Positions 7,949 to 20,427 of a stretch of 64,000 bases of DNA are shown piece by piece. This DNA comes from Utricularia gibba (taxonomy: Eukaryota > Plantae > Magnoliophyta). Numbering within the stretch: the stretch's first letter is position 1; each line of letters opens with the position of its first letter. Position numbers and translations under genes: made by a program. The stretch spans positions 2,852,001-2,916,000 of the forward strand of contig NEEC01000007.1 in the NCBI GenBank assembly GCA_002189035.1, in the 5' to 3' direction. The notes below the pieces were generated by a model, which saw nothing but the letters and a program-made list of their open reading frames with translations, did not search any database and was not told the DNA's origin.

Positions 7949-9417
7949 TCACAGGGATTCTCCTTCTGCTGTATAACCAGCAAGATGATCCATTTCCCAG
8001 CTCTCATGGGGAGCGACATTCCCATCAAAAGGAACATGATTCTGTGCGAAAGGCAGGAATTAGGTGCTGCTCCTGATGAAGAAGATACAGACAGTATTGC
8101 TTTATAGTTGTGCAGATATCAGTTACCTCCATCTTACTGATGAGTTCTTTGGCCGTGGAAGCAGACAGAATGATGTTCCTTGCCCCTGCTTTTATGAAGC
8201 CTTCCTTCACACCATTGTCGAACAATGCCAGTAAAGGGTCGTAGTATCCATCCACATTCAGCAAACCAACCTGTTCGTATCACCAAACATGTGTTGTAAG
8301 TTGAGAGGTCTTGCCAAAGCATGAATAGGCGGAAAGACGCATCACCGGTTTAGTGTGGATTCCAAGCTGTGCCCAAGTTATCATCTCCAGAAGCTCTTCC
8401 ATGGTTCCGTATCCTCCTGAAAGTGGGATTAAATGCACAGTTTTCGCTTGGAAAGCAATAAACTTCTCCATCTGGGAGTGAAGAGTAATGTTTGTACCAG
8501 GAAGAGCGATGAAGGCTTCTGACTCTCGTGCCATTACAGCTTTACGCTCGTGCATGTCTGAAACAATCTTCACATCTCCAACAGCTTCCCCTGATATCTG
8601 TCACATACAAACCATGTGCCCATGGCATATAGCTTAACTATGAAAGAAACACACTGCACAGAAGACCCTTGTGCCCTCAAAGCTGCCATACCCTCAAGTC
8701 TACTGTTTCATACCTCTACCTCCAAATGCAGTAAGATTCACTTGCAGCAGAACATTTCGAGGCAAAAGGTTCAACTATTGCTCACTAATACATACTTTTA
8801 CAACTTCCCAACACATTGTAAATTAAGGGATGAGAAGGATGCAGCAGCTGAGAGACCAAATTTGAAACACTACCAGTAAGTACCTCAACGGGGACTAGAG
8901 CTCGTGGATTACTCTGCATTTGAAGCAAAATAAATCCCATGTAAAGCTATTATCCATAAGCCATGATATTGACAAACTTTATTTAAAGCTGGGCTTGGTC
9001 TAGATCATGGGCGTGAATTTCCAGAATCGAAATACAAATACAGAGATCACTGATCATGAATTATAGATTTTGAACAATCGAGTGAAAAAGAAGGGGACTT
9101 ACCCAAGAACACTGCAGCCTCCGTCATATACTCTCTGTGATATTAGCCCCATTAGTCCAACGCTCCCACCTCCATAAACCAAGTTTATCTTTCTATTCAC
9201 CTGCAAATGAAAGCGATCCCTCCATCAATATACTGTTCACAAAGCTCCGGTACTTATTGCTATCTCATTAGATGATTTTTCACTGAGACAAACAACTAAC
9301 GAGTTCGTTTCCCAAGTCAATAGCAGCATCTCTGAAGACTTCCCTACGGCCTGGATTGCTTCCACAGAAAACGCAGATTCTCTTGAATTTGACACCGCCG
9401 TTCGCTTCGTTTTCCAT
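7949..9417 (-). CDS. LOG: LONELY GUY cytokinin phosphoribohydrolase (LOG8-like); exon 3 is 1 nt short as assembled
   Basis: Seven exons: 9417-9301, 9200-9103, 8913-8884, 8597-8498, 8416-8346, 8270-8127 and 8041-7949. Motifs [31 protein letters not shown] and [10 protein letters not shown]. Confidence 0.93.
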
Positions 9418-12400
9418 TTTCGATTCCTTCTACGCGAACACCCACAAAGAGAGAACTCTGAAAAAATAAAGGGAACACATTCAATATTCTAATCCAATGC
9501 GTCAAAAGGAAAAAGCTGCAAATGTGTGAAGAAAAGAAAACGAAGGCAACATCACAAAAAGAGGCATCAGGGTACTCTTTTTGTCAGATTAATCCCCCGG
9601 AATCAGACACAAAAAAAAAAGAAAAAAAAACATTGTGGGGTCTGAGAAAAAGGGGCGAATGTTACAGGATGAAGTCAAAAGTAACCCAAATGAGAAGCCG
9701 CACTTCACGTTCTGTGAATATTTTATAGCAGGCAGCTCGGAGATGATCAAATGCAACAAAGACAGAGAGACAAGAAGGAGGAATCCTGTTTTACAACTAT
9801 ATTCCGCAAATCATTAAATGAAGAAAAGAAGGAAAATGGTCCCCATGTGTCTTGGTCACTGGTCACACCCCTGTTTTTGAGATCACTCGAGGAAGACAAG
9901 ATCAGGGAATCCAAACCATTCATTGCTAAAAATCTCATCTTTCATCAAAACCAACAATTGGTTTGTCCAAATTTGTAACCGTTACTTCAATGAGCGAACA
10001 AATTTTCCAGCCAAAGTAAAAACAAGTCGAAGATGAACTGGCAAGCCATCGGTCCAATTCAAGGCCACCGTGGCCCTAACGGGGGATGCGAAGACGAAGA
10101 TGAAAAGGAGTGATACTTGCTCCCAGCCAAGGCCAACCATTCCTTCGTTTTCCGATCCCACCGGAAAAGATGACAATCATTCATAACACTGGCGCACAAA
10201 CTCCGAAACACCACCGCTACAACGGCTTCGTTGGTGAGACTGAGCCCATCTGTGATCAGGATGATGGCGCACTTACTTATTCATTTCCGATTCTCCGTGC
10301 GCCGACTCGTCTTTGTTCTTGTGTTGCAGCGGCGAACTTCCACATTTGCAGTTACAGGGAGTCCCTTGACCTAGAAGAAATGCAAGACGTCAGTTAGCAG
10401 TAGCGCATAATGCTCCTCAGTTCTGCCTCCCCCGAGCTCCCCCCAACCAATCACACCCCATCTCTACACCTGCTAGAGGCGTATCCGCATTAATGTGCAT
10501 AAAGACAAGAAAGACAAACTTTCAGCTTCCTGACATCAGTTTAGCAGCAGTTGCCAATTTCATGCCCATTAAAGATAATATTTTTCCATTGAAAAAAAAT
10601 AATATTTTATATTTTAATATTTAGTAAAACATTTATTTCATTATGCATAATTTTATAATAAATTTTTATCAAATACATTATAATATTTATTATTTCATTT
10701 TTTTGTAAACTAAGCGTAACCAAATGTAACTAACAATTATTCTATTACATGTTATGTTCGTTTGGATACACACCCCTCATAATTTTACATTTTCTATACT
10801 CAAGAAAAGGATATCATTCAAAGAATCATTTTATTTAACTAATGTCGTATACTGTGGCCCATACATCATTTTTTTGTCCAAAATAGAAAGATCAAGCCTT
10901 TTTTTTAACCCCACGTCTACTTCCAAAAATATCTACAAAATAATATATATCTCTATAATTATTTATTTATTCGTGTTCCCAAAGTTAAAGGGTCTGGTTG
11001 TCCACTGTACGGCCCCCTTTCCTTTTTGGGCACGCATTCCAGAATGAGTTTGACCACCCAAAACATGTCGTCATTTTTTAAAAAGTCAACCCTCTTCGGA
11101 TGCCTATTAATTGATACTTGCGATTAAATTGTGACCTAAGTGATGTAATAATAAATAATTCCAATAACCTGAAAGAGTAGTACGATTTTAATATTTCCCT
11201 GTTGGGTTCCCCCGTCTGTGTATATGGTTCTCGCCTGCTGCCCGGTCATCGAACACACACGGTGATGAGGCATCTCTCATTCGAGGCATGCTCCCCCTTG
11301 TCGCCCAAGAGACGTGTCCGCGTCGCCAGGGATACTTCCGGTGGATCGGCGACACGGAGCTCCAGGTACAGAGGCGTCACTAGGTAAAGTCATATTGCTT
11401 AACGGAATAATGGCATGGGAAAGTAACCCCTTTTAAGAGGAATCACATCGTGATCTAGGCAATCTCTTGGTGGTGCAGACACAAAGCCACCGGAAGGTAC
11501 GAAGCTCACCTCTGGGACAGGACCGCTTGGAACCCCAGCCGCAGAGTGCGGGGAAAGCAAAGTACACTCCTCCTCCTCACGCTTTATTTTTTCATGGATT
11601 AAAATGATGACATTGATATTGCTTCTTCGACGCCTATTTATTATTCTACTATCATCACTTTCCATGCAATTATATTTTATGTTACTGATTTTTGTTGTTT
11701 GATGATCGCGTCTCCTGGCGACTGATGCGTTCCAAATAACTTAACAACGAAAGTCTATTTAGGTATGTAACTGTTGTTTTTGGATCATTTTTTCTTCTTT
11801 TTACTGATCCGTGTTCTGTGGTTTTGAGATGAGTGATGGCTGTTTCCTGTTTGGGGTCTGTTGTTGTTATGATTGCAGCAAACACTAATGTGGGTTGATG
11901 TGCAGGGCGTATGCCGTTGAGGAAGACGCCGCCCGAGCATACGATCTTGCCGCTCTTAAGCACTGGGGCCGCGCCGCCGTGCTCAATTTCCCGGTAGATA
12001 TCTAGCAGCACACACACACGACTGAAAATGAGATTCTATCAGAGTGATTCATAAGAGACACGGTCACACACCAACCCCAAATTTAAACTTTCTGAATTTC
12101 GACACAACGTCTGAATGAAGGACAGGCCCAAGTGTATGGGAAGGAGATGGAGGAGATGCAGAAGGTGAACAAGGAGGTTTATCTTGCTCACCTGAAACGC
12201 AACAGCAGCGGATTCTCCCGAGGCACTTCCAAGTATCGTGGGGTCACAAGGTGACGGATGATCAATCTCAATGGCGATGTTACCATGAATATGTGTTTGT
12301 ATCTTAAATAGAAGATGATGAATTTCTAGGCATCATAACAGTGCCCGATGGGAGGCTCGAATTGGGCTCCTGCACAGCAAAAAGTATATCTATCTGGGTA

Positions 12401-12766
12401 CTTACGGTATGATGATCCCACTTTTCCATACTTAAAAAAAAATTGTACACAGAATGATTGTTCTTGCACTTGTTTCTCTGATGCAGACACCGAAGAAGAA
12501 GCTGCAGCGGCGTATGATATGGCGGCCATCGAAATCCGAGGTCAAAACGCTGTGACCAACTTCGAGGCCAGCAACTACAACTACACTGAAAAGCTGAAGG
12601 GACCCCATGAAGCGGACACCACTGGCCTTCCGAGCGTATACGAACAAGAACTGCAGGACGACCTCCAGGAGTCATCGGGGAGTAATGCTCTGTTATGTCA
12701 TGAACCCGAGATAAACTCACTAGACGTGAGCATGATGCACGGCTGGGATCCATGCCTCGTTAGCGC

Positions 12767-13156
12767 TGATGTCGAGTGAGGACGAATATGAGATAAACCA
12801 GCAGCAAACTGTGAGAAATGTGGAGGACCCAGAACAGGAAAATACGAATGTGTTGAGAGATAACGGGAGGAAGAAGAAGAAGGTCTGTCAGCAACTCGGA
12901 CTGATTATACTGGACAGCAAGATCAGAAGATGGGCCACCAACAAAGATCTTGCTACTCATCCACTTCAAGAAAATGGCCCAACATGATGATATGGCCCAA
13001 CGTGCTGAAGTCAATATTGTTGGAAGTCGTAGTGAGCAACGGCTAATCCCTAGAAGTAGGCGACCGTTGCTAAAGAACTATAAATATGTGTACTCTTGCA
13101 TAACATTAAAATATATCTGTTCTACAACCCTCACACATCGATATAAACTGCTATCA
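12767..13156 (+). repeat. 5' LTR (390 bp)
   Basis: TGATGTCGAG...CTGCTATCA; no difference from the 3' LTR by eye; TATAAAT at 13079-13085. Confidence 0.97.
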
Positions 13157-13174
13157 TGGTGAACCCGACGTGAA
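13157..13174 (+). other. Primer-binding site complementary to the 3' end of cytosolic tRNA-Trp
   Basis: TGGTGAACCCGACGTGAA directly after the LTR. It is the reverse complement of TTCACGTCGGGTTCACCA, the 3' end of plant tRNA-Trp(CCA) as I recall it. Confidence 0.8.
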
Positions 13175-13288
13175 ACAAGCAGCTCAACATTGCTATCCTT
13201 CCAAACACGGTTTGCCACTCAAACACTACATCTAAAGGCTTCTTACCTTACTCTATATTCTATCGCAGGTTCTCAAAAGAGTGTCATC

Positions 13289-16200
13289 ATGTCTGTAACA
13301 AACATATTACCTCCCATTTTTGACGGAAAGGAATACGATATTTGGGCGCCAAAAATGGAGATATATCTCCAACTTCATGGGCTCTGGAAAATAATAGCCA
13401 CTGATCCAGTTTTTGAAGGAACACCTGAAGAAAAAACTGCAGCTGAAAAAGCTTATAGAGACAAAGAAATTCAGGCTGCAGCTGTGCTAGCCACAGCAGT
13501 GGTTGGAGATGCTTACAGGTGTATAACTCGAAGGTCTCCAAGAGAGGCGTGGCTTATGCTCGAGAAAACCTTTGAAGAAACAAAGGAAGACAAGCACAGG
13601 GAGATACAGAAACTATGGAATGAAGTTTACAACTTCAAAATTAGAGATGGCGAGGTAGCCACCAATGCAGAACAACTTCTCAAAAACCTGGAAAAACTAA
13701 AGCGCCTTGGAGAAGAAGTTGACTCCCGTGAAGAGCGCAAGCTTAAGGCCAGGATCATTCATAGTGCTCCGGCAGATTATGATGCTGTCGTTGAATCCTT
13801 GGAAGCAACCGGATTTCTAGAAACTCTGAGTCTGCAGCAACTGCTCCAACACTTCAAAAATGTGGACAGCAGACGTAAATCTCGCAATGAAGAAAATCTA
13901 TTAGAAGCTGCCTTCAAAGCATCACTTACTATAGCAGGTCCTAAAGGAGAAAATGGGACACAACAATATTCTGCACCAAGTTTCCTACCTGTCAAGAAAG
14001 AGAAAAAGGGGCCACATCCTCCTTGCCCATATTGCGCACAGAAAAACCACATTCCAACGAACTGTTTTTGGCATCCTGAGGCTCATTGCGCAATCTGTTC
14101 AACCAAAGGCCATGTGGAGCGTGTGTGTCCCACCAAGAAATCATATGCCTCTACTTATGTTGTTGCTGCATCTTCTGAACATTCAAAAAACAAATCAATT
14201 CATGTATCTCCTGATGATTCAAATATGAAAGTGAAGTCTTCAGTTTATATCTTGTGCAGCAAGACTACTCTCTCTGATTTCACTGATCTACGACACAACA
14301 CAATCTGGTTCATTGATTGCGCCTGCAGTAATCACTTGACCAACAACAAGTCTATATTCACAACATATACCCCAATATCAGGAAAAACTCTCACCATTGC
14401 TGATGGAACGCTCATTGCAGTTGAAGGTGTTGGATCAATCTGTCTGGAAACTGAACAAAAACTCATCAAGATTACTAATGTATTCTATGTACCAAAGGCT
14501 TCTCACAACTTACTGAGTGCAGGACAACTAGCAGAATGTGGATATGAGTTGAATATAGAGAACAATATGTGCTTGTTGAAGGATTATGCTCACAATATTG
14601 TACTAAAAGTGCCCATGGTAAATCGCCTCTTTCCAGTTAACTGCATGACAACTAATAGTAATTTCTGTCTTGCAGCTGTAAATACCTCTTTCCTATGGCA
14701 CAAAAGATTAGGTCACTATCATGCAAGCCAACTCAGAACAGCGCAAACCCAAGGAGTTATACATGGCGTACCTCAATTAAAGGACTGGAATTTCCCGTGC
14801 AGCACCTGTCTATTTGGGAAAATGCACAAGAAGCCATTCAAGAATCGTACTGAAGTATCCGACTCTAAACTACAGCTAGTAGTCTCTGACGTATGCGGAC
14901 CTATGCATGTTGAGACACCTGGTGGAAAGAAATTCTATGTCCTATTTATTGATGACTACACCAAGCATATGTGGGTATATTTTCTTAAGCAAAAGTCTGA
15001 AGTGACTAAATACTTCAAGCAGTTCAAGATGATGGCAGAATTACAAAGCAATTGTAGAATACTTACTTTGCATTCAGACAATGGCGGGGAATACAAATCA
15101 TCCGAACTCCGAGACATCTGCAATGCAAGTGGTATAGTTCATCGGTTTACCGTTCCATATACCCCTCAACAAAATGGTGTTTGTGAAAGGAAAAATCAAA
15201 CGATTATGAATATGGCTCGTTGCTTGTTATTGGAACACAACTTACCATTGCGCTTTTGGGGAGAAGCTGTTAACACAGCGGTATTCCTATTAAATCGACT
15301 TCCCACCAAAGGAATACCTGAAGGAAAAACTCCACATGAACTGTGGTATGGAAAAGTCCCAGATCTACAGAATCTGAAAATCTTCGGATCCCTCTGCTAT
15401 GTCCATATATCTAAAGAAAAACGCAGAAAGTTAGAGAATCATGCTCAAATGGGGGTCTTTATGGGATATTCGGACTCCTCTCAAATTTACAGAATATTTA
15501 TTCCATCCAAACAATGTATAGAAGTTCAAAGATGTGCTGATGTTGTGGTTGAAGAAAGTCTGACCTATGACTGGCATAATATCTCTTCTACTCCTGAAAA
15601 CGAAGCTGAATATTCCAGAGACATGCAACTCCTATTTCCTATCAATGCATCTGAAAATCTTACTGAAATGCACGAAGAGAATCTTGTCAATGAACTTCCT
15701 GAAACTAATACCACTATTACGAATAATTCCAATCTTGTTGGTGCAGAAACAGAGGACAACAATTATTTCAGACATCACTCAGAAAGGAATCAAGACATGC
15801 AAAGTAATGATCATATGCCATATCCTACTTCGTCGCAACAGCCTCAACATGGAGAAAGCAGAGAATCAGAATATCAATTCTCTTCATTACAAGAACAGGA
15901 GGAAAATACATCTCACTTCCAAAACTCTGAGCAAATTATATCTGAAAGACATGATAACACAGAAAATATCTCAGAAGATTCAGCAAACAACTACAATTCC
16001 TATACACATCACTTTATGCTGCAGTCAGCCGATCATCTCATAGATGAAGAGCCTGCTAGAGGTTACTGTCCTCTTACTGAAGTCTATGACAGATCGCTTA
16101 TGATTTGTGAACCTACCTCTCCCTTCGAAGCTCTCAATGATCCTGCATGGAAAACCTCAATGGATAATGAGTTACAGGCCATAGCAGAGCATCAAGTGTG

Positions 16201-17944
16201 GACAGCGGTGGATAAACCTCTCAATATTAAACCGTTGGGATTAAAATGGATTTATCGCACAAAGCTAAATCCAGACGGCTCAGTAAATAAGTTAAAGTCT
16301 AGGCTGGTTGCAAAAGGATATCTTCAAAAGGAAGGTATAGACTACTGGGAGACTTTCGCACCGGTAGCTCGTCTGGATACAATAAAATTGATTATCGCAT
16401 TAGCCGCCAGTCAAGGTTGGATCCTGCACCATTTAGACATAAAGAATGCGTTTCTGAATGGAGACTTGAAAGAAGACATATATGTTGAAAATCCTCCCGG
16501 TTTTACACTAAAGGATGGCTCAAATAAGGTGTTAAAACTCCAAAAGGCTCTCTACGGGCTTAAACAAGCGCCCAAGGAATGGTATTCAACCATAGATTCA
16601 TACTTTGGTCAAATGGGTTATATCAGAAGCAAGAACGACCCTACTCTATACACCCTCAACAATCAAACTGGAAAGGTCATCATATCTTTATACGTTGATG
16701 ACATCTTACTAACAGGAAATAACGAGACATTGATAGCAGATCAAAAATCAAGGCTCAAACAACGGTTCGAATTGACTGATCTAGGGCCAGCAAGATATAT
16801 TCTTGGACTAGAGATAATACAAGATCCCAATTTTATATTTCTCAGCCAGCAAAAATACACTGAAGACTTACTAAAAAAATTTGGGATGGACAATGCAAAA
16901 GAAGCAACTACGCCTTTCACTCCATACCTGAAGAACAAGGCAAACAACTATCTGAAAGAATTAAATTCTGCCGATTCAGGGCCACAAGATCCTCAAGAAA
17001 ATTCAGTGAACATACGAGAATATCAGAAGACTGTTGGTGCCCTACTATACCTCACCTCAACTCGACCGGACATTACATTCGCTGTAACGTTTCTATCCAG
17101 GTTTATGCATCACCCTCTTGCTTTACACCTTAGAATAGCTAAACAAATATTCAAATATCTGAATGCTACAAAAACTATGGGTTTATACTTCAAAAGGCAT
17201 ACTGACCTATCTCTTCAAGGGTTCGTAGACTCTGATTTCGCAGGTGACGAATCTGATCTTAAATCCACCACTGGTTATTTGTTTACTCTGGGCTCTGCTG
17301 CATTTGCTTGGAACAGCAGAAAACAGACCTTAGTAGCTCAATCCTCAGCCGAAGCAGAATACATGGCTGGAGCTTGTGCTGCAAATCACGCTCAATGGCT
17401 CCTGAAATTATGTGAAGATTTACAGATCAAGATTAACAAGCCACTCATTCTGAAAATTGACAGCAAATCAGCCATAAGTATAGCTCAAAATCCGGTCATG
17501 TTTGGGAAGACGAAGCATATCAAAATCAAATACCATGTTCTTAGGGAATACATCAAAGAAGGAAGCATAAAATTGGAGTATTTACCATCAGAAAGACAAG
17601 CCGCAGACATTCTCACCAAAGCCCTCTTTCCAAGTCATTTCTCTCAAATCCGTGAGCTATTAGGGCTGCGCAGAAATCCCTTGATTACTGCTGCCTCATC
17701 TCATGTTCTTCCTCAAGGAGGAATGATGTCGAGTGAGGACGAATATGAGATAAACCAGCAGCAAACTGTGAGAAATGTGGAGGACCCAGAACAGGAAAAT
17801 ACGAATGTGTTGAGAGATAACGGGAGGAAGAAGAAGAAGGTCTGTCAGCAACTCGGACTGATTATACTGGACAGCAAGATCAGAAGATGGGCCACCAACA
17901 AAGATCTTGCTACTCATCCACTTCAAGAAAATGGCCCAACATGA
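13289..17944 (+). CDS. Copia Gag-Pol polyprotein
   Basis: First ATG at 13289 (MSVTNILPPIFDG..YDIW). Zinc knuckles CPYCAQKNH..C and CAICSTKGH...C; protease WFIDCACSNH; integrase LWHKRLGH, SDNGGEY and PQQNGVCERKN; RT TFAPVARLDTI, DIKNAFLNG, LYGLKQAP and YVDD; RNase H DSDFAG, AEAEY and ADILTK. Confidence 0.97.
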   Translation: MSVTNILPPIFDGKEYDIWAPKMEIYLQLHGLWKIIATDPVFEGTPEEKTAAEKAYRDKEIQAAAVLATAVVGDAYRCITRRSPREAWLMLEKTFEETKEDKHREIQKLWNEVYNFKIRDGEVATNAEQLLKNLEKLKRLGEEVDSREERKLKARIIHSAPADYDAVVESLEATGFLETLSLQQLLQHFKNVDSRRKSRNEENLLEAAFKASLTIAGPKGENGTQQYSAPSFLPVKKEKKGPHPPCPYCAQKNHIPTNCFWHPEAHCAICSTKGHVERVCPTKKSYASTYVVAASSEHSKNKSIHVSPDDSNMKVKSSVYILCSKTTLSDFTDLRHNTIWFIDCACSNHLTNNKSIFTTYTPISGKTLTIADGTLIAVEGVGSICLETEQKLIKITNVFYVPKASHNLLSAGQLAECGYELNIENNMCLLKDYAHNIVLKVPMVNRLFPVNCMTTNSNFCLAAVNTSFLWHKRLGHYHASQLRTAQTQGVIHGVPQLKDWNFPCSTCLFGKMHKKPFKNRTEVSDSKLQLVVSDVCGPMHVETPGGKKFYVLFIDDYTKHMWVYFLKQKSEVTKYFKQFKMMAELQSNCRILTLHSDNGGEYKSSELRDICNASGIVHRFTVPYTPQQNGVCERKNQTIMNMARCLLLEHNLPLRFWGEAVNTAVFLLNRLPTKGIPEGKTPHELWYGKVPDLQNLKIFGSLCYVHISKEKRRKLENHAQMGVFMGYSDSSQIYRIFIPSKQCIEVQRCADVVVEESLTYDWHNISSTPENEAEYSRDMQLLFPINASENLTEMHEENLVNELPETNTTITNNSNLVGAETEDNNYFRHHSERNQDMQSNDHMPYPTSSQQPQHGESRESEYQFSSLQEQEENTSHFQNSEQIISERHDNTENISEDSANNYNSYTHHFMLQSADHLIDEEPARGYCPLTEVYDRSLMICEPTSPFEALNDPAWKTSMDNELQAIAEHQVWTAVDKPLNIKPLGLKWIYRTKLNPDGSVNKLKSRLVAKGYLQKEGIDYWETFAPVARLDTIKLIIALAASQGWILHHLDIKNAFLNGDLKEDIYVENPPGFTLKDGSNKVLKLQKALYGLKQAPKEWYSTIDSYFGQMGYIRSKNDPTLYTLNNQTGKVIISLYVDDILLTGNNETLIADQKSRLKQRFELTDLGPARYILGLEIIQDPNFIFLSQQKYTEDLLKKFGMDNAKEATTPFTPYLKNKANNYLKELNSADSGPQDPQENSVNIREYQKTVGALLYLTSTRPDITFAVTFLSRFMHHPLALHLRIAKQIFKYLNATKTMGLYFKRHTDLSLQGFVDSDFAGDESDLKSTTGYLFTLGSAAFAWNSRKQTLVAQSSAEAEYMAGACAANHAQWLLKLCEDLQIKINKPLILKIDSKSAISIAQNPVMFGKTKHIKIKYHVLREYIKEGSIKLEYLPSERQAADILTKALFPSHFSQIRELLGLRRNPLITAASSHVLPQGGMMSSEDEYEINQQQTVRNVEDPEQENTNVLRDNGRKKKKVCQQLGLIILDSKIRRWATNKDLATHPLQENGPT
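17714..17723 (+). other. Polypurine tract
   Basis: CAAGGAGGAA immediately before the 3' LTR. Confidence 0.75.
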
Positions 17945-18113
17945 TGATATGGCCCAACGTGCTGAAGTCAATATTGTTGGAAGTCGTAGTGAGCAACGGC
18001 TAATCCCTAGAAGTAGGCGACCGTTGCTAAAGAACTATAAATATGTGTACTCTTGCATAACATTAAAATATATCTGTTCTACAACCCTCACACATCGATA
18101 TAAACTGCTATCA
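17724..18113 (+). repeat. 3' LTR (390 bp)
   Basis: Same sequence as 12767-13156, followed by the TSD AGCGC. Confidence 0.97.
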
Positions 18114-20427
18114 AGCGCTTCCGATGTTCCTCTGTTTTCCGGCGATGGGATGATGATGGAAGAAACGTCAACCCTCTGCACCAACACGGGCTTCCATGAC
18201 GACGGCATCTTTGAGTGGGCATTTGGAGATCAAGGTATGCTTTATCTACATGTATAAAGAGGGCTTTCTTTGCACTTGCTCTTCTGCTAAACTGCTCCTT
18301 TTTGGTTGCAGTGATCAACTTCAACGTAAGCGAAACCATCGGCATAGGAGAAATGCAGCACACCAGCAGACGAACAGCGTCACACGACGATCAACTGATT
18401 CATGTTCCTGAGTTAAGTCCACCAAACCTGCTACTCTCCCAAGGCATGGGTGAGATGAACCCCTGGAACGATCTGGAACCGGATCTATTCTTCGATCATA
18501 CCTTCAACATTTCTTCCTTTTTCGACGTCATGACCTACGACGATGGAACAAGGGCCTGATATCCCCCACACTGAGTACCACATAACTACAGCACTCTCGC
18601 TTCTCAAACATGGAAACTTGCTACTGTTCATTCTCATTGGCACGTCAGATGAGAATTTTATTTCACTTTTTTTCTCGCCTTTATCTTACAAAAACAACAA
18701 CATCAACAAACTGTTTGAAGAAATTGAATGTAAGTAACATAAAACTTGTCCAGAAATATAAGCTACTATATGTGAACTAAGTGTTGGCATTGACAATGCC
18801 GTACTGTGCAATCCATGTGTCTACACAAGTAGCCACGTGGGTGGCCAATACAAATGATATCAGCAAGTACTACAGAAATCACATAGGCGTGCGTGCTTCT
18901 TGACTCTGCTGCATTCGTCAATGCAGCAGCATATCATCATCTGGGCTGCCACCCCAACATCGATACTATGGGAAATCCCCTTCCTTGGGGCAACCATACT
19001 CGGTTAATAAAAACCCCAATATACAACTCTAGTATTTATGTTAAATTAAAATAATACAGATAACCATTTCTCAAATAAACTCAAAATCCGTGTCCTTTGA
19101 GCTGATATAAAGCACAGCCGGATTGAAAGAGGTAGTCAAATTATATATAAATGATCATTCGTACAATCTTTCTCACATAATAAATTAAAATTTTTACATT
19201 AGTTCATTTTTATTAGACACTCATACGGGGACGTCCACTTTTCTAATGCAACTCCATGATATTTATGAAAAAGTGATGCTGAAATTCAGAATTCGATAGA
19301 TTGAATAAGAATATGTAAAGTTTAAATATATAAGAAATATAAATTATATTAAAAAAGATTAGATTTAAATCTATTATTATTGATTTATAATTTATTATAG
19401 TATAAATAATAATAATAAGTTGTATTATACACATAAACTAATTTATTTATCAAATACTGCTTAAATATATACTTTTCTAAAGGATTGAAGCAAATAAATT
19501 AGTTATCCAAAAAAATATATAAATTGAAACAACAATAAATAATATGTTAATACAATTATACAAAAATAATAAAGTATTTTAAAATAAAAAAATTAAATAA
19601 TATAATATTTTATAAATTTCTAGTTTAAAACTAAAACGATTCATACTTCAAAATAAATAAGTTCATAAGTTCAAAAATATAAAAATTTATATTTCTATAA
19701 GAGTCCATGTTTTCATCTCTAACTCATAAAATAACGATAAGATAAATGTATCTAAATTTTAAATTATCCAAATTTTACAAAATAAAAAGCGATGAAGAAA
19801 AGGAACAAGAAACCTTGGGTAGTAAGAGACAATACAAAAATAGATGAGAAACCCTAATTATCATAACATTTGAATTTGATTTAAATAATTATTTTTAACA
19901 CTTTAATATTATTTTCGAATTAATTGTATTTTATAAATAATAAAATAATTTGAAGATTTCAAGTTGTAGAAAAAGAATATATTCAATTAAATTAATCCTA
20001 TGTAATGTTTTAATACATACTGTATTACGTATTCAATATGTATTCGATATTCGACATTTGAAATATTTTTGTAATATTTTCAATTTAGATGGTAATATTT
20101 GAAATATTAAATATTTTTTTGAAATAATGGTAATTTCAATGGTTTAGGATGAATTTGGGTTCATTTAATAAATGCGATCAACACATTTTGGATGATTGCT
20201 CGCAAAGAGGGAATCGGATTCCTCGCTGGTCAAAAAACTTCTTCCCTCTCTCGCCATGGGAGGAAAGAAATTAGGTAAGATGGGAGGGGATCCCATTTTT
20301 CCGATTGGCGGTCATCTCTGTCTAATGGGTTCTCCGGCAATCTCCTGCAGCGTCGTTTTTCGGCAGCCTCTGCGGGAACTCGCCGCCGTCCCGGGAGCCA
20401 TCCAGGTCATCAGTCGACGGTGCGAAG

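Follow-up and report, generated by a model that had tools for sequence, protein, structure and literature searches.

Because young LTR retrotransposon insertions into exons are a well-known source of mutation in plants, the insertion that we describe here is in itself ordinary. The closest described systems are the exon alleles made by plant Ty1/copia (Pseudoviridae) elements such as Tnt1, Tos17, and ONSEN. With these, the present element shares TG..CA LTRs and a 5-bp target-site duplication, a single GAG-PR-INT-RT-RH frame with a primer-binding site beside its 5' LTR plus a polypurine tract before the 3' LTR, and the outcome of exon insertion, in which the host frame runs into the LTR and meets a stop within a few codons. 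WRINKLED1 (WRI1) proteins are fatty-acid regulators that switch on genes of glycolysis and fatty-acid synthesis by binding AW-boxes. For AtWRI1, the protein with which we compare the product of the interrupted gene, the transactivation domain was reportedly mapped by Ma et al. in 2015 to about aa 307–397. Reviews describe the AtWRI1 C-terminus as containing a transactivation domain plus a separate PEST degron (PMC7011094, PMC6681333). As for priming, a survey of ~5,400 plant copia elements found that tRNA-Met is used by every copia lineage priming with whole tRNAs, and non-chromovirus Ty3/gypsy elements prime the minus strand with the 3' end of tRNA-Trp (PMC6317226).

We examined a window (the whole 64-kb stretch of DNA analysed) that contains one such insertion. 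It is probable that a full-length Ty1/copia element of a recently moved family integrated in sense orientation into a WRI-clade gene, most probably WRI1, within its last coding exon, and that it did so after the split from a second accession, referred to below as X6.

Structure and age of the insertion

The element is full-length (5,347 bp) and occupies positions 12767–18113 on the forward strand, in the sense direction relative to the host gene. Its 5' LTR (12767–13156) and 3' LTR (17724–18113) are both 390 bp long, begin and end with TG..CA, and have the same sequence. Alignment of the two gave 390/390 identity with zero mismatches, ending exactly at both LTR ends. The 5-bp sequence AGCGC lies on either side (12762–12766 and 18114–18118), so that direct TG..CA repeats with a flanking 5-bp duplication are present as in Ty1/copia elements. 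A preliminary description of this DNA had claimed identical LTRs and a perfect AGCGC duplication, and the alignment bore this out. The LTR start sequence occurs twice in the window compared with 0 expected occurrences. Within the 5' LTR there are TATAAA signals at 13079 and 13142 and an ATTAAA at 13105, and a polypurine tract on the forward strand, AAGGAGGAA (17715–17723), adjoins the 3' LTR. Searches of the 64-kb window with blastn and tblastn found no further copies or fragments of the element.

Assembled contigs from other samples were compared with both junctions. In X6, which carries the same species label but belongs to a different study and has flanks that differ by ~2–3% from the window, a 3,288-nt contig joins 12761 to 18114, skipping 5,352 bases. 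This is an exact empty site with a single AGCGC copy. Hence, accessions under this species label are not fixed for the insertion; X6 is no evidence for segregation within one population. By contrast, short-read contigs of X3 cross the left (12443–12796) and right (18089–18298) junctions without a mismatch. X3 was sampled in the study that probably also supplied the assembly, so it is not fully independent. The junctions are seen in samples of that study only, and the window is probably from a long-read assembly, both of which could be taken to mean that a repeat was misplaced inside the host gene. We find this barely credible, given the agreement of the X3 short-read contigs and given that a perfect 5-bp duplication with exact LTR ends is the signature of an integrase rather than of misassembly. 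In addition, excising 12767–18118 restores a single open host frame and a conserved protein motif. These results also agree with the earlier placement of the element within a coding exon.

Zero differences between the LTRs gave a 95% upper age of ~0.30–0.55 million years, assuming rates of 1.3e-8 to 7e-9 substitutions per site and year. LTR–LTR gene conversion is known in plants, and conversion between the LTRs or with other copies could make an old insertion look young. This is very improbable here because the site is empty in X6, the 4.65-kb ORF is still open, a collapsed multi-copy contig matches the internal sequence exactly, and the target duplication has no mismatch. As had been proposed from the sequence, the insertion is very young: its two LTRs do not differ, and a diverged accession that bears the same species label has no element at this site.

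The host gene and its truncated product

The portion of the host gene 5' of the insertion spans 11265–12766 on the forward strand. Its exons are at 11265–11383, 11479–11561, a micro-exon at 11754–11762 (or 11754–11766), 11906–11993, 12126–12250, 12330–12406, and the last exon from 12487 to the insertion at 12766; all introns are GT-AG. The severed rest of the last exon (18119–18257, forward strand) contains 45 codons, SDVPLF...TGFHDDGIFEWAFGDQ..., followed by a TAA stop at 18255–18257. A candidate splice donor, CAAG/GTATGC, lies near 18235 on the forward strand in this remainder. The spliced protein matched double-AP2 proteins over residues 20–214 (59% identity, E 4e-73) and has two AP2 domains with the conserved linker. 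Single host exons are too short for this and gave weak, partial Pfam AP2 matches below thresholds.

To place the gene we used trees, C-terminal motifs, and DNA-contact residues. The host is firmly inside the WRI clade (WRI1/3/4 type, apart from the ANT/PLT type), with an SH-aLRT support of 99 in a 102-row tree and 100/99 in a careful 27-row tree. In the best tree, it groups (72/92.7) with a set that includes clusters named WRI1 by NCBI (Pistacia vera, Zingiber). Placement with a WRI3/4-like set was not rejected when the AP2 domains were the only input (p-AU 0.275), the host branch being long, and cluster names are uninformative for the WRI3/4-like and non-seed-plant groups. The tail of the host protein carries motifs of the WRI1 type (W-x-x-C-L/M-D and TGF-E-D-D-I-D/E-F-x-F). 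Its HGWDPCL... and ...TGFHDDGIFEWAF align with ...TWSFGLD...TGFEDDIDFMF of Pistacia WRI1 and with ...PWDLCLD...KGFEDDIEFIF of a WRI1-like protein from Buddleja, whereas by eye the tails of WRI3/4-like proteins differ (FP-D/E-D-I/V-Q-T-F/Y-F). A by-eye comparison with the published list of AtWRI1 DNA-contact residues found that T70, H72, T75, E79, H81, W83, Q98, Y100, E181, and R183 are kept; the departures are R73 to K and W74 to A. Judged from sequence comparison, the gene is most probably on the WRI1 branch and the WRI1 orthologue of a Lentibulariaceae plant, probably the reference line of Utricularia gibba. The preliminary description had called it WRINKLED1-like, which fits both the clade support and the grouping with WRI1-named proteins.

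Other searches added less. A library-wide search returned 869 AP2 proteins. Scarcely any match extended much past the AP2 part and the few longer ones stop by residue 93 of 99, which means that the host tail has no close relative among the cluster representatives. A word search with the host last-exon ORF gave no matches, a look-up in the ESM Atlas returned generic AP2 clusters only (all <0.9), and a literature search for Utricularia plus WRINKLED1 found nothing relevant.

Micro-exons of 9 nt that encode VYL are not peculiar to WRI1. In the host, the forward-strand stretch from 11754 to the exon-4 acceptor at 11906 begins with a micro-exon coding I-Y-L at the position of this "VYL" motif. Taken as 9 nt (11754–11762), the micro-exon has AG/GT borders and leaves the frame into exon 4 one base short. 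A 13-nt version, with a GT donor after 11766, keeps the frame and adds one Met that is absent from all five of the aligned proteins. The frame break could be a real 1-bp loss, could be rescued by the alternative donor, or could be an assembly error in a run of Gs.

This break raises the idea that the host copy was already non-functional or dispensable, through the micro-exon frameshift or as a redundant duplicate left by whole-genome duplication, and that the insertion was neutral, the gene being in decay. We regard this as unlikely. Skipping the micro-exon is no cure for the frame, W74, which is reportedly highly conserved among WRI1 orthologues, is Ala, and no host-gene RNA was seen in any run examined. 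On the other hand, a base missing from a G run is a typical long-read assembly error, the 13-nt micro-exon would preserve the frame, the remaining splice sites and frames show no defect, and conservation extends to the C-terminal motifs. The host branch (0.43–0.58 compared with a median of ~0.09) is what a decaying gene might show, but Lentibulariaceae are known for rapid sequence evolution, which would account for its length. When the window and the X6 allele were compared over the last two host exons, five of the six coding differences were synonymous (P = 0.002). For this reason we consider the host gene to have been under constraint, which argues against prior decay.

The effect of the insertion on the host protein can be read from the junction. 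The reading frame ends ...CLVSADVE at a TGA stop (12777–12779), 11–13 nt inside the 5' LTR, so that the previously proposed truncation at ...LVSADVE was right; both AP2 domains are 5' of the insertion and are retained, also as proposed. The accompanying claim that most of the acidic tail is removed did not hold. After the second AP2 domain the tail has ~112 residues, of which 67 (12 acidic) are kept and 45 (8 acidic) are lost. The conserved W-D-x-C-L motif precedes the insertion point and the conserved T-G-F-x-D-D motif follows it, and the lost residues include the C-terminal TGF-x-DD..F motif. In the uninterrupted form the host protein is short (307 aa) and has no Ser-rich PEST tail past the last motif.

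We propose that transcripts of the filled allele would terminate within the 5' LTR or read into it. Both types would be expected to give a 265-aa protein, made of 262 host residues plus DVE, in which the two AP2 domains for DNA binding and two thirds of the disordered tail remain. This product would be missing the last 45 residues and, with them, the conserved acidic-hydrophobic motif. On this prediction, the truncated protein is likeliest to be a weakened or inactive activator. It is also possible that it would act as a dominant-negative competitor for DNA binding or that the allele would be null at the mRNA level.

Coding capacity, priming, and activity of the element

The element contains a single forward-strand gag-pol ORF of 1,551 codons from an ATG at 13289 to 17944 (stop at 17942–17944) with no internal stop; its final 221 nt are within the 3' LTR. 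This agrees with the stop-free frame of 4.6 kb noted before. Along the polyprotein, gag (13355–13888; Pfam Retrotran_gag_2, aa 23–200) is followed by two CCHC knuckles (aa 246 and aa 267), a protease barrel (14306–14545; Pol_BBD, aa 340–419, E 8.5e-23), a Pfam gag_pre-integrs match (aa 447–512), an integrase with an HHCC motif (14627–15166; rve, aa 528–626), an SH3-like domain (15347–15565), an RT (16193–16918; RVT_2, aa 969–1210, E 1.5e-78) with YVDD at aa 1135, and an RNase H 3' of the RT, all on the forward strand. The order GAG-PR-INT-RT-RH with an RVT_2 domain in Pfam is that of copia elements. The nearest database polyproteins were ≤40% identical over the best local alignments, with 51% across one short stretch. 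At this distance the element could not be assigned to a copia lineage (Ale, Ivana, Tork, etc.). No exact matches to the polyprotein, or to a neighbouring 427-aa protein, are on record in public assemblies.

The protease active-site triplet is D-C-A (14315–14323, forward strand; aa 343–345), compared with D-S-G in all ten of the distant relatives examined. An autonomous element needs a D-S/T-G catalytic motif at this position, and because of this departure the copy may be non-autonomous. A collapsed 3,113-nt contig of X3 spans the triplet and agrees with the window there, and none of the differences listed for the X6 family variants falls in the triplet. The insertion had been described as intact, and this stands for its full length and open frame, with a caveat for the protease.

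An 18-nt primer-binding site (13157–13174, forward strand) is flush with the 5' LTR and is the complement of the nuclear tRNA-Trp(CCA) 3' end plus CCA. Among the metagenome loci scanned, ten tRNA genes overlapped the pattern of this site; all ten were tRNA-Trp and in all ten the 15-nt gene-encoded part corresponds to the tRNA 3' end, exactly or within one base. There are no tRNA genes in the 64-kb window. The primer-binding site and polypurine tract are placed as is general for copia, but the primer is tRNA-Trp rather than the usual tRNA-Met. Non-chromovirus gypsy elements are also primed by tRNA-Trp, but the RVT_2 domain and an integrase that precedes the RT make the element copia, not gypsy.

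Several observations bear on how many copies there are and whether they move. In X3, the depth was 51 for the LTR contig and 21 and 8 for internal contigs compared with ~3 for the flanks, and in a further contig the end of the 3' LTR is followed by a different flank. In X9, a probable RNA run, the LTR is joined to yet another flank. Taken together, the depths and the additional flanks suggest that the family has several identical copies. Family sequence, including LTR contigs, is present in X9. In one X9 contig, a 92-nt GT..AG intron on the antisense strand of gag (13425–13516, reverse strand; GTAAGC...TTCTTCAG) is spliced out; the joint is from 13422 to 13515, with CT..AC ends for the cut at +2. 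No full-length sense transcript, extrachromosomal DNA, or new insertion of the family was observed among the run contigs. Substitutions between the window copy and the X6 family variants in gag-protease numbered 10 synonymous to 19 non-synonymous, a ratio too weak to argue for constraint. The family, which had been suggested to be probably still active, shows signs of recent activity, namely several identical copies, other insertion sites, and sequence in X9. A more far-reaching proposal is that a currently transposing copia lineage with tRNA-Trp priming and a D-C-A protease is mobile in a ~100-Mb genome with reportedly weakened RNA-directed DNA methylation, and that the WRI1 hit is recent, perhaps heterozygous in a clonal reference line, and gives a truncated DNA-binding WRI1 with altered activity. 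We think this quite unlikely as a whole.

Comparison with known systems

A defective allele of this gene may be private to the reference line, and the gene models and expression data obtained from it might then be untypical of the species. The host shares with AtWRI1 two AP2 domains with a WRI-type linker, a candidate VYL-type micro-exon, and a disordered acidic tail with W-x-x-C-L/M-D and (T)GF-E-D-D/N-I-D-F-M-F-type motifs. It differs in being 307 aa long without a Ser-rich PEST tail, in having I-Y-L for V-Y-L, and in the changes of W74 to Ala and R73 to Lys. As a natural variant that truncates the C-terminus of a WRI1-type regulator between two conserved tail motifs, the allele could help to map the activation region.

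The genome is probably among the smallest and the poorest in transposons of any flowering plant, and every live family in it bears on how it remains small. The element belongs to a copia family that has moved there very recently. It has the same primer as the tRNA-Trp-primed non-chromovirus Ty3/gypsy elements but, unlike them, has RVT_2 and an integrase before the RT. Compared with plant Ty1/copia elements, it has a tRNA-Trp primer-binding site, a D-C-A protease, and an ORF that runs 221 nt into the 3' LTR. Of these comparisons, the choice of primer and the protease motif are more interesting than the gene hit.

The copia element and its age

The Ty1/copia retrotransposon at 12767–18113 (5,347 bp) has LTRs of 390 bp each at 12767–13156 and 17724–18113. 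When the direct repeat was extended base by base, no mismatch was found between the two LTRs and the identity broke off precisely at both boundaries. Both LTR copies start with TG and end with CA, and AGCGC abuts the element on either side (12762–12766 and 18114–18118). The sequence at the LTR start occurs twice in the window, both times at the LTRs, against 0 occurrences expected, and no further pieces of the element were found elsewhere in the 64-kb window. An ORF of 1,551 open codons extends from an ATG at 13289 to a stop at 17942–17944. Pfam matches on this ORF are in copia order: copia-type gag, the Pol beta-barrel (protease), GAG-pre-integrase, the integrase core, an SH3-like domain, and RVT_2 (E 1.5e-78). 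The ORF also contains two CCHC knuckles, the integrase HHCC motif, YVDD, and an ADILTK-type C-terminal motif, and a short purine tract, AAGGAGGAA, lies directly 5′ of the 3′ LTR. The closest polyproteins in a collection of 5.8 billion proteins are at most 40% identical over the best local alignments, with 51% identity over one short stretch.

This is a real and very young full-length copia insertion. The preliminary description of it, with identical LTRs, an AGCGC duplication, and a stop-free ORF, was borne out in every point. With 0 differences in 2 × 390 bp, the 95% upper bound on the age is ~0.30–0.55 million years at rates of 1.3e-8 to 7e-9 substitutions per site per year, which agrees with the earlier view that the insertion is very recent.

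The host gene and the predicted truncated protein

The host gene is on the + strand with exons at 11265–11383 and 11479–11561, a micro-exon at 11754, and exons at 11906–11993, 12126–12250, and 12330–12406, all with GT-AG borders. The last exon starts at 12487 and is cut by the element after 12766. The spliced exons encode a double-AP2 protein. Upstream, on the minus strand (8280–9420), is a neighbour that resembles a LOG-type cytokinin riboside 5′-monophosphate phosphoribohydrolase gene, as judged by eye from motifs in ORF translations. For a 427-aa NYN-domain protein encoded nearby, the best matches are from Lamiales at ~70% identity, with 79% identity to a partial Genlisea aurea protein.

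We compared the spliced protein with 150 representatives out of a full-library search and found 55–60% identity across both AP2 domains, with E values down to 4e-73. In trees of the AP2 region the host falls inside the WRI clade with strong support (SH-aLRT 99 in a large tree, 100/99 in a careful tree). The best tree puts it with a set that includes clusters named WRI1 by NCBI (Pistacia vera, Zingiber; support 72/92.7), and an AU test does not reject grouping with a WRI3/4-like set (p-AU 0.275). The tail is more decisive than these trees. Its HGWDPCL aligns to TWSFGLD of Pistacia WRI1 and PWDLCLD of a protein from Buddleja (Lamiales), and its TGFHDDGIFEWAF aligns to TGFEDDIDFMF and KGFEDDIEFIF, respectively. 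From these tail alignments, it is quite likely that the host gene is a WRI1 orthologue. Those published DNA-contact residues of Arabidopsis WRINKLED1 (AtWRI1) that were checked by eye are kept in the host except that R73 is Lys and W74 is Ala (11479–11500). W74 is described as highly conserved among WRI1 orthologues, and a W74R change increases DNA affinity tenfold (PMC9401623).

The insertion point lies between the two conserved tail motifs. The filled allele encodes 262 host residues followed by D-V-E and a stop at 12777–12779, which is the truncation that had been proposed. With the element removed, 45 further host codons follow in frame to a TAA at 18255–18257, giving 307 aa in total. The suggestion that most of the tail is removed was overstated; of the ~112 aa beyond the second AP2 domain 67 are retained and 45 are lost, with 12 acidic residues in the retained part and 8 in the lost part. 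The lost 45 residues include the best-conserved acidic-hydrophobic motif of the tail. According to reviews, the AtWRI1 C-terminus holds both a PEST degron and, distinct from it, a domain for transactivation (PMC7011094, PMC6681333), and we infer that the lost segment may match one or the other.

The functional outcome of the insertion is a prediction from sequence, and the upstream frame of the host gene calls for caution. If the micro-exon has its canonical 9 nt (I-Y-L), one base is lacking at its joint with exon 4 and the reading frame breaks (11754–11906). Skipping the micro-exon also leaves the frame broken. Use of the next GT gives a 13-nt micro-exon that keeps the frame and adds one residue, absent from all five aligned proteins. 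A mistake of the assembly within a run of Gs could explain this one-base problem, as could a genuine deletion or a change that has been compensated. It speaks against long-standing decay of the gene that, in exons 6–7, five of the six coding differences from the allele in X6, a run with the same species label from a different study, are synonymous, compared to 21% expected (P = 0.002).

Filled and empty sites and transcripts in public runs

Evidence from public runs comes from contigs compared over 6,000 letters. In X3, the second sample of the probable source's study, contigs span both junctions without mismatch (12443–12796 and 18089–18298) and another contig runs past the end of the 3′ LTR into other flanking sequence. 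Depths in this run are 51 for the LTR contig, 21 and 8 for internal contigs, and ~3 for the flanks; these give a rough hint of several identical copies rather than a count. A 1,250-nt X3 contig (depth 8) has an extra A in the seven-A run at 16866–16872 in the RT-RNase H part. This would break the frame, and reflects either a frameshifted other copy or a homopolymer error.

In X6, a 3,288-nt contig joins 12761 straight to 18114 with a single AGCGC, and is thus an empty site. Over 442 bp of flank it shows 10 substitutions and 3 indels, the latter in introns, relative to the window, and the element occurs in this run as variants at 95–99% identity only. The insertion is therefore not fixed across the species label.

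In the probable RNA run (X9), the LTR continues into a third flanking sequence. A minus-strand contig of this run over 13343–13787 lacks 92 nt of gag (13425–13516) with antisense GT..AG borders (GTAAGC...TTCTTCAG), which argues that X9 is real RNA. The splice points to a member of the family from which antisense RNA is transcribed through gag. No host-gene RNA was seen in the contigs of any run over the 6,000 letters compared. A 2021 run (X5) has more than 1,300 short contigs on the element (12767–18113), for which C>T and G>A are the sole kinds of difference listed, and no cover of the host flanks. Our guess is that this pattern fits a bisulfite library in which cytosines of the element are methylated and those of the gene are not. 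The dates of the runs agree with published work on Utricularia gibba, the probable source, which includes a bisulfite and small-RNA study from 2021. That study reports that methylation is low and DCL3 truncated, and that clonal propagation has maintained the reference plant since 2006 (PMC8333044).

Less ordinary traits of the element

Interruption of the last exon of a WRI1-type gene by a very young copia element adds one more case to a familiar class of events. The less ordinary traits of the element are its tRNA-Trp primer, a D-C-A protease motif, an ORF that ends inside the LTR, and splicing on the antisense strand. The ORF overlaps U3 of the 3′ LTR by 221 nt (17724–17944), which adds 73 codons past the usual C-terminus; an open frame as long as this extension arose in 0.8% of shuffles. 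The same ORF, 72 codons long from an ATG at base 3, is present in each LTR (12769–12987 in the 5′ LTR). The protease active-site triplet (14315–14323) is D-C-A, compared to D-S-G in 10 of 10 distant relatives. The triplet appears to be shared by the family and not to be recent damage to this copy, because the multi-copy X3 contig is the same as the window there and no difference is listed for the diverged X6 variants.

The primer-binding site (13157–13174) is the 18 nt after the 5′ LTR and pairs without mismatch to the 3′-terminal 15 bases of nuclear-type tRNA-Trp(CCA) genes plus CCA. We scanned metagenome contigs for the 15-mer and typed the overlapping tRNA genes. All 10 genes, at seven metagenome loci, were tRNA-Trp; the 15-mer is the exact 3′ end of eight and within one base of it in two. 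As a comparison, in a plant survey covering ~5,400 copia elements, a tRNA-Trp primer occurred in non-chromovirus gypsy elements only, and every copia lineage that uses whole tRNAs was primed by tRNA-Met (PMC6317226).
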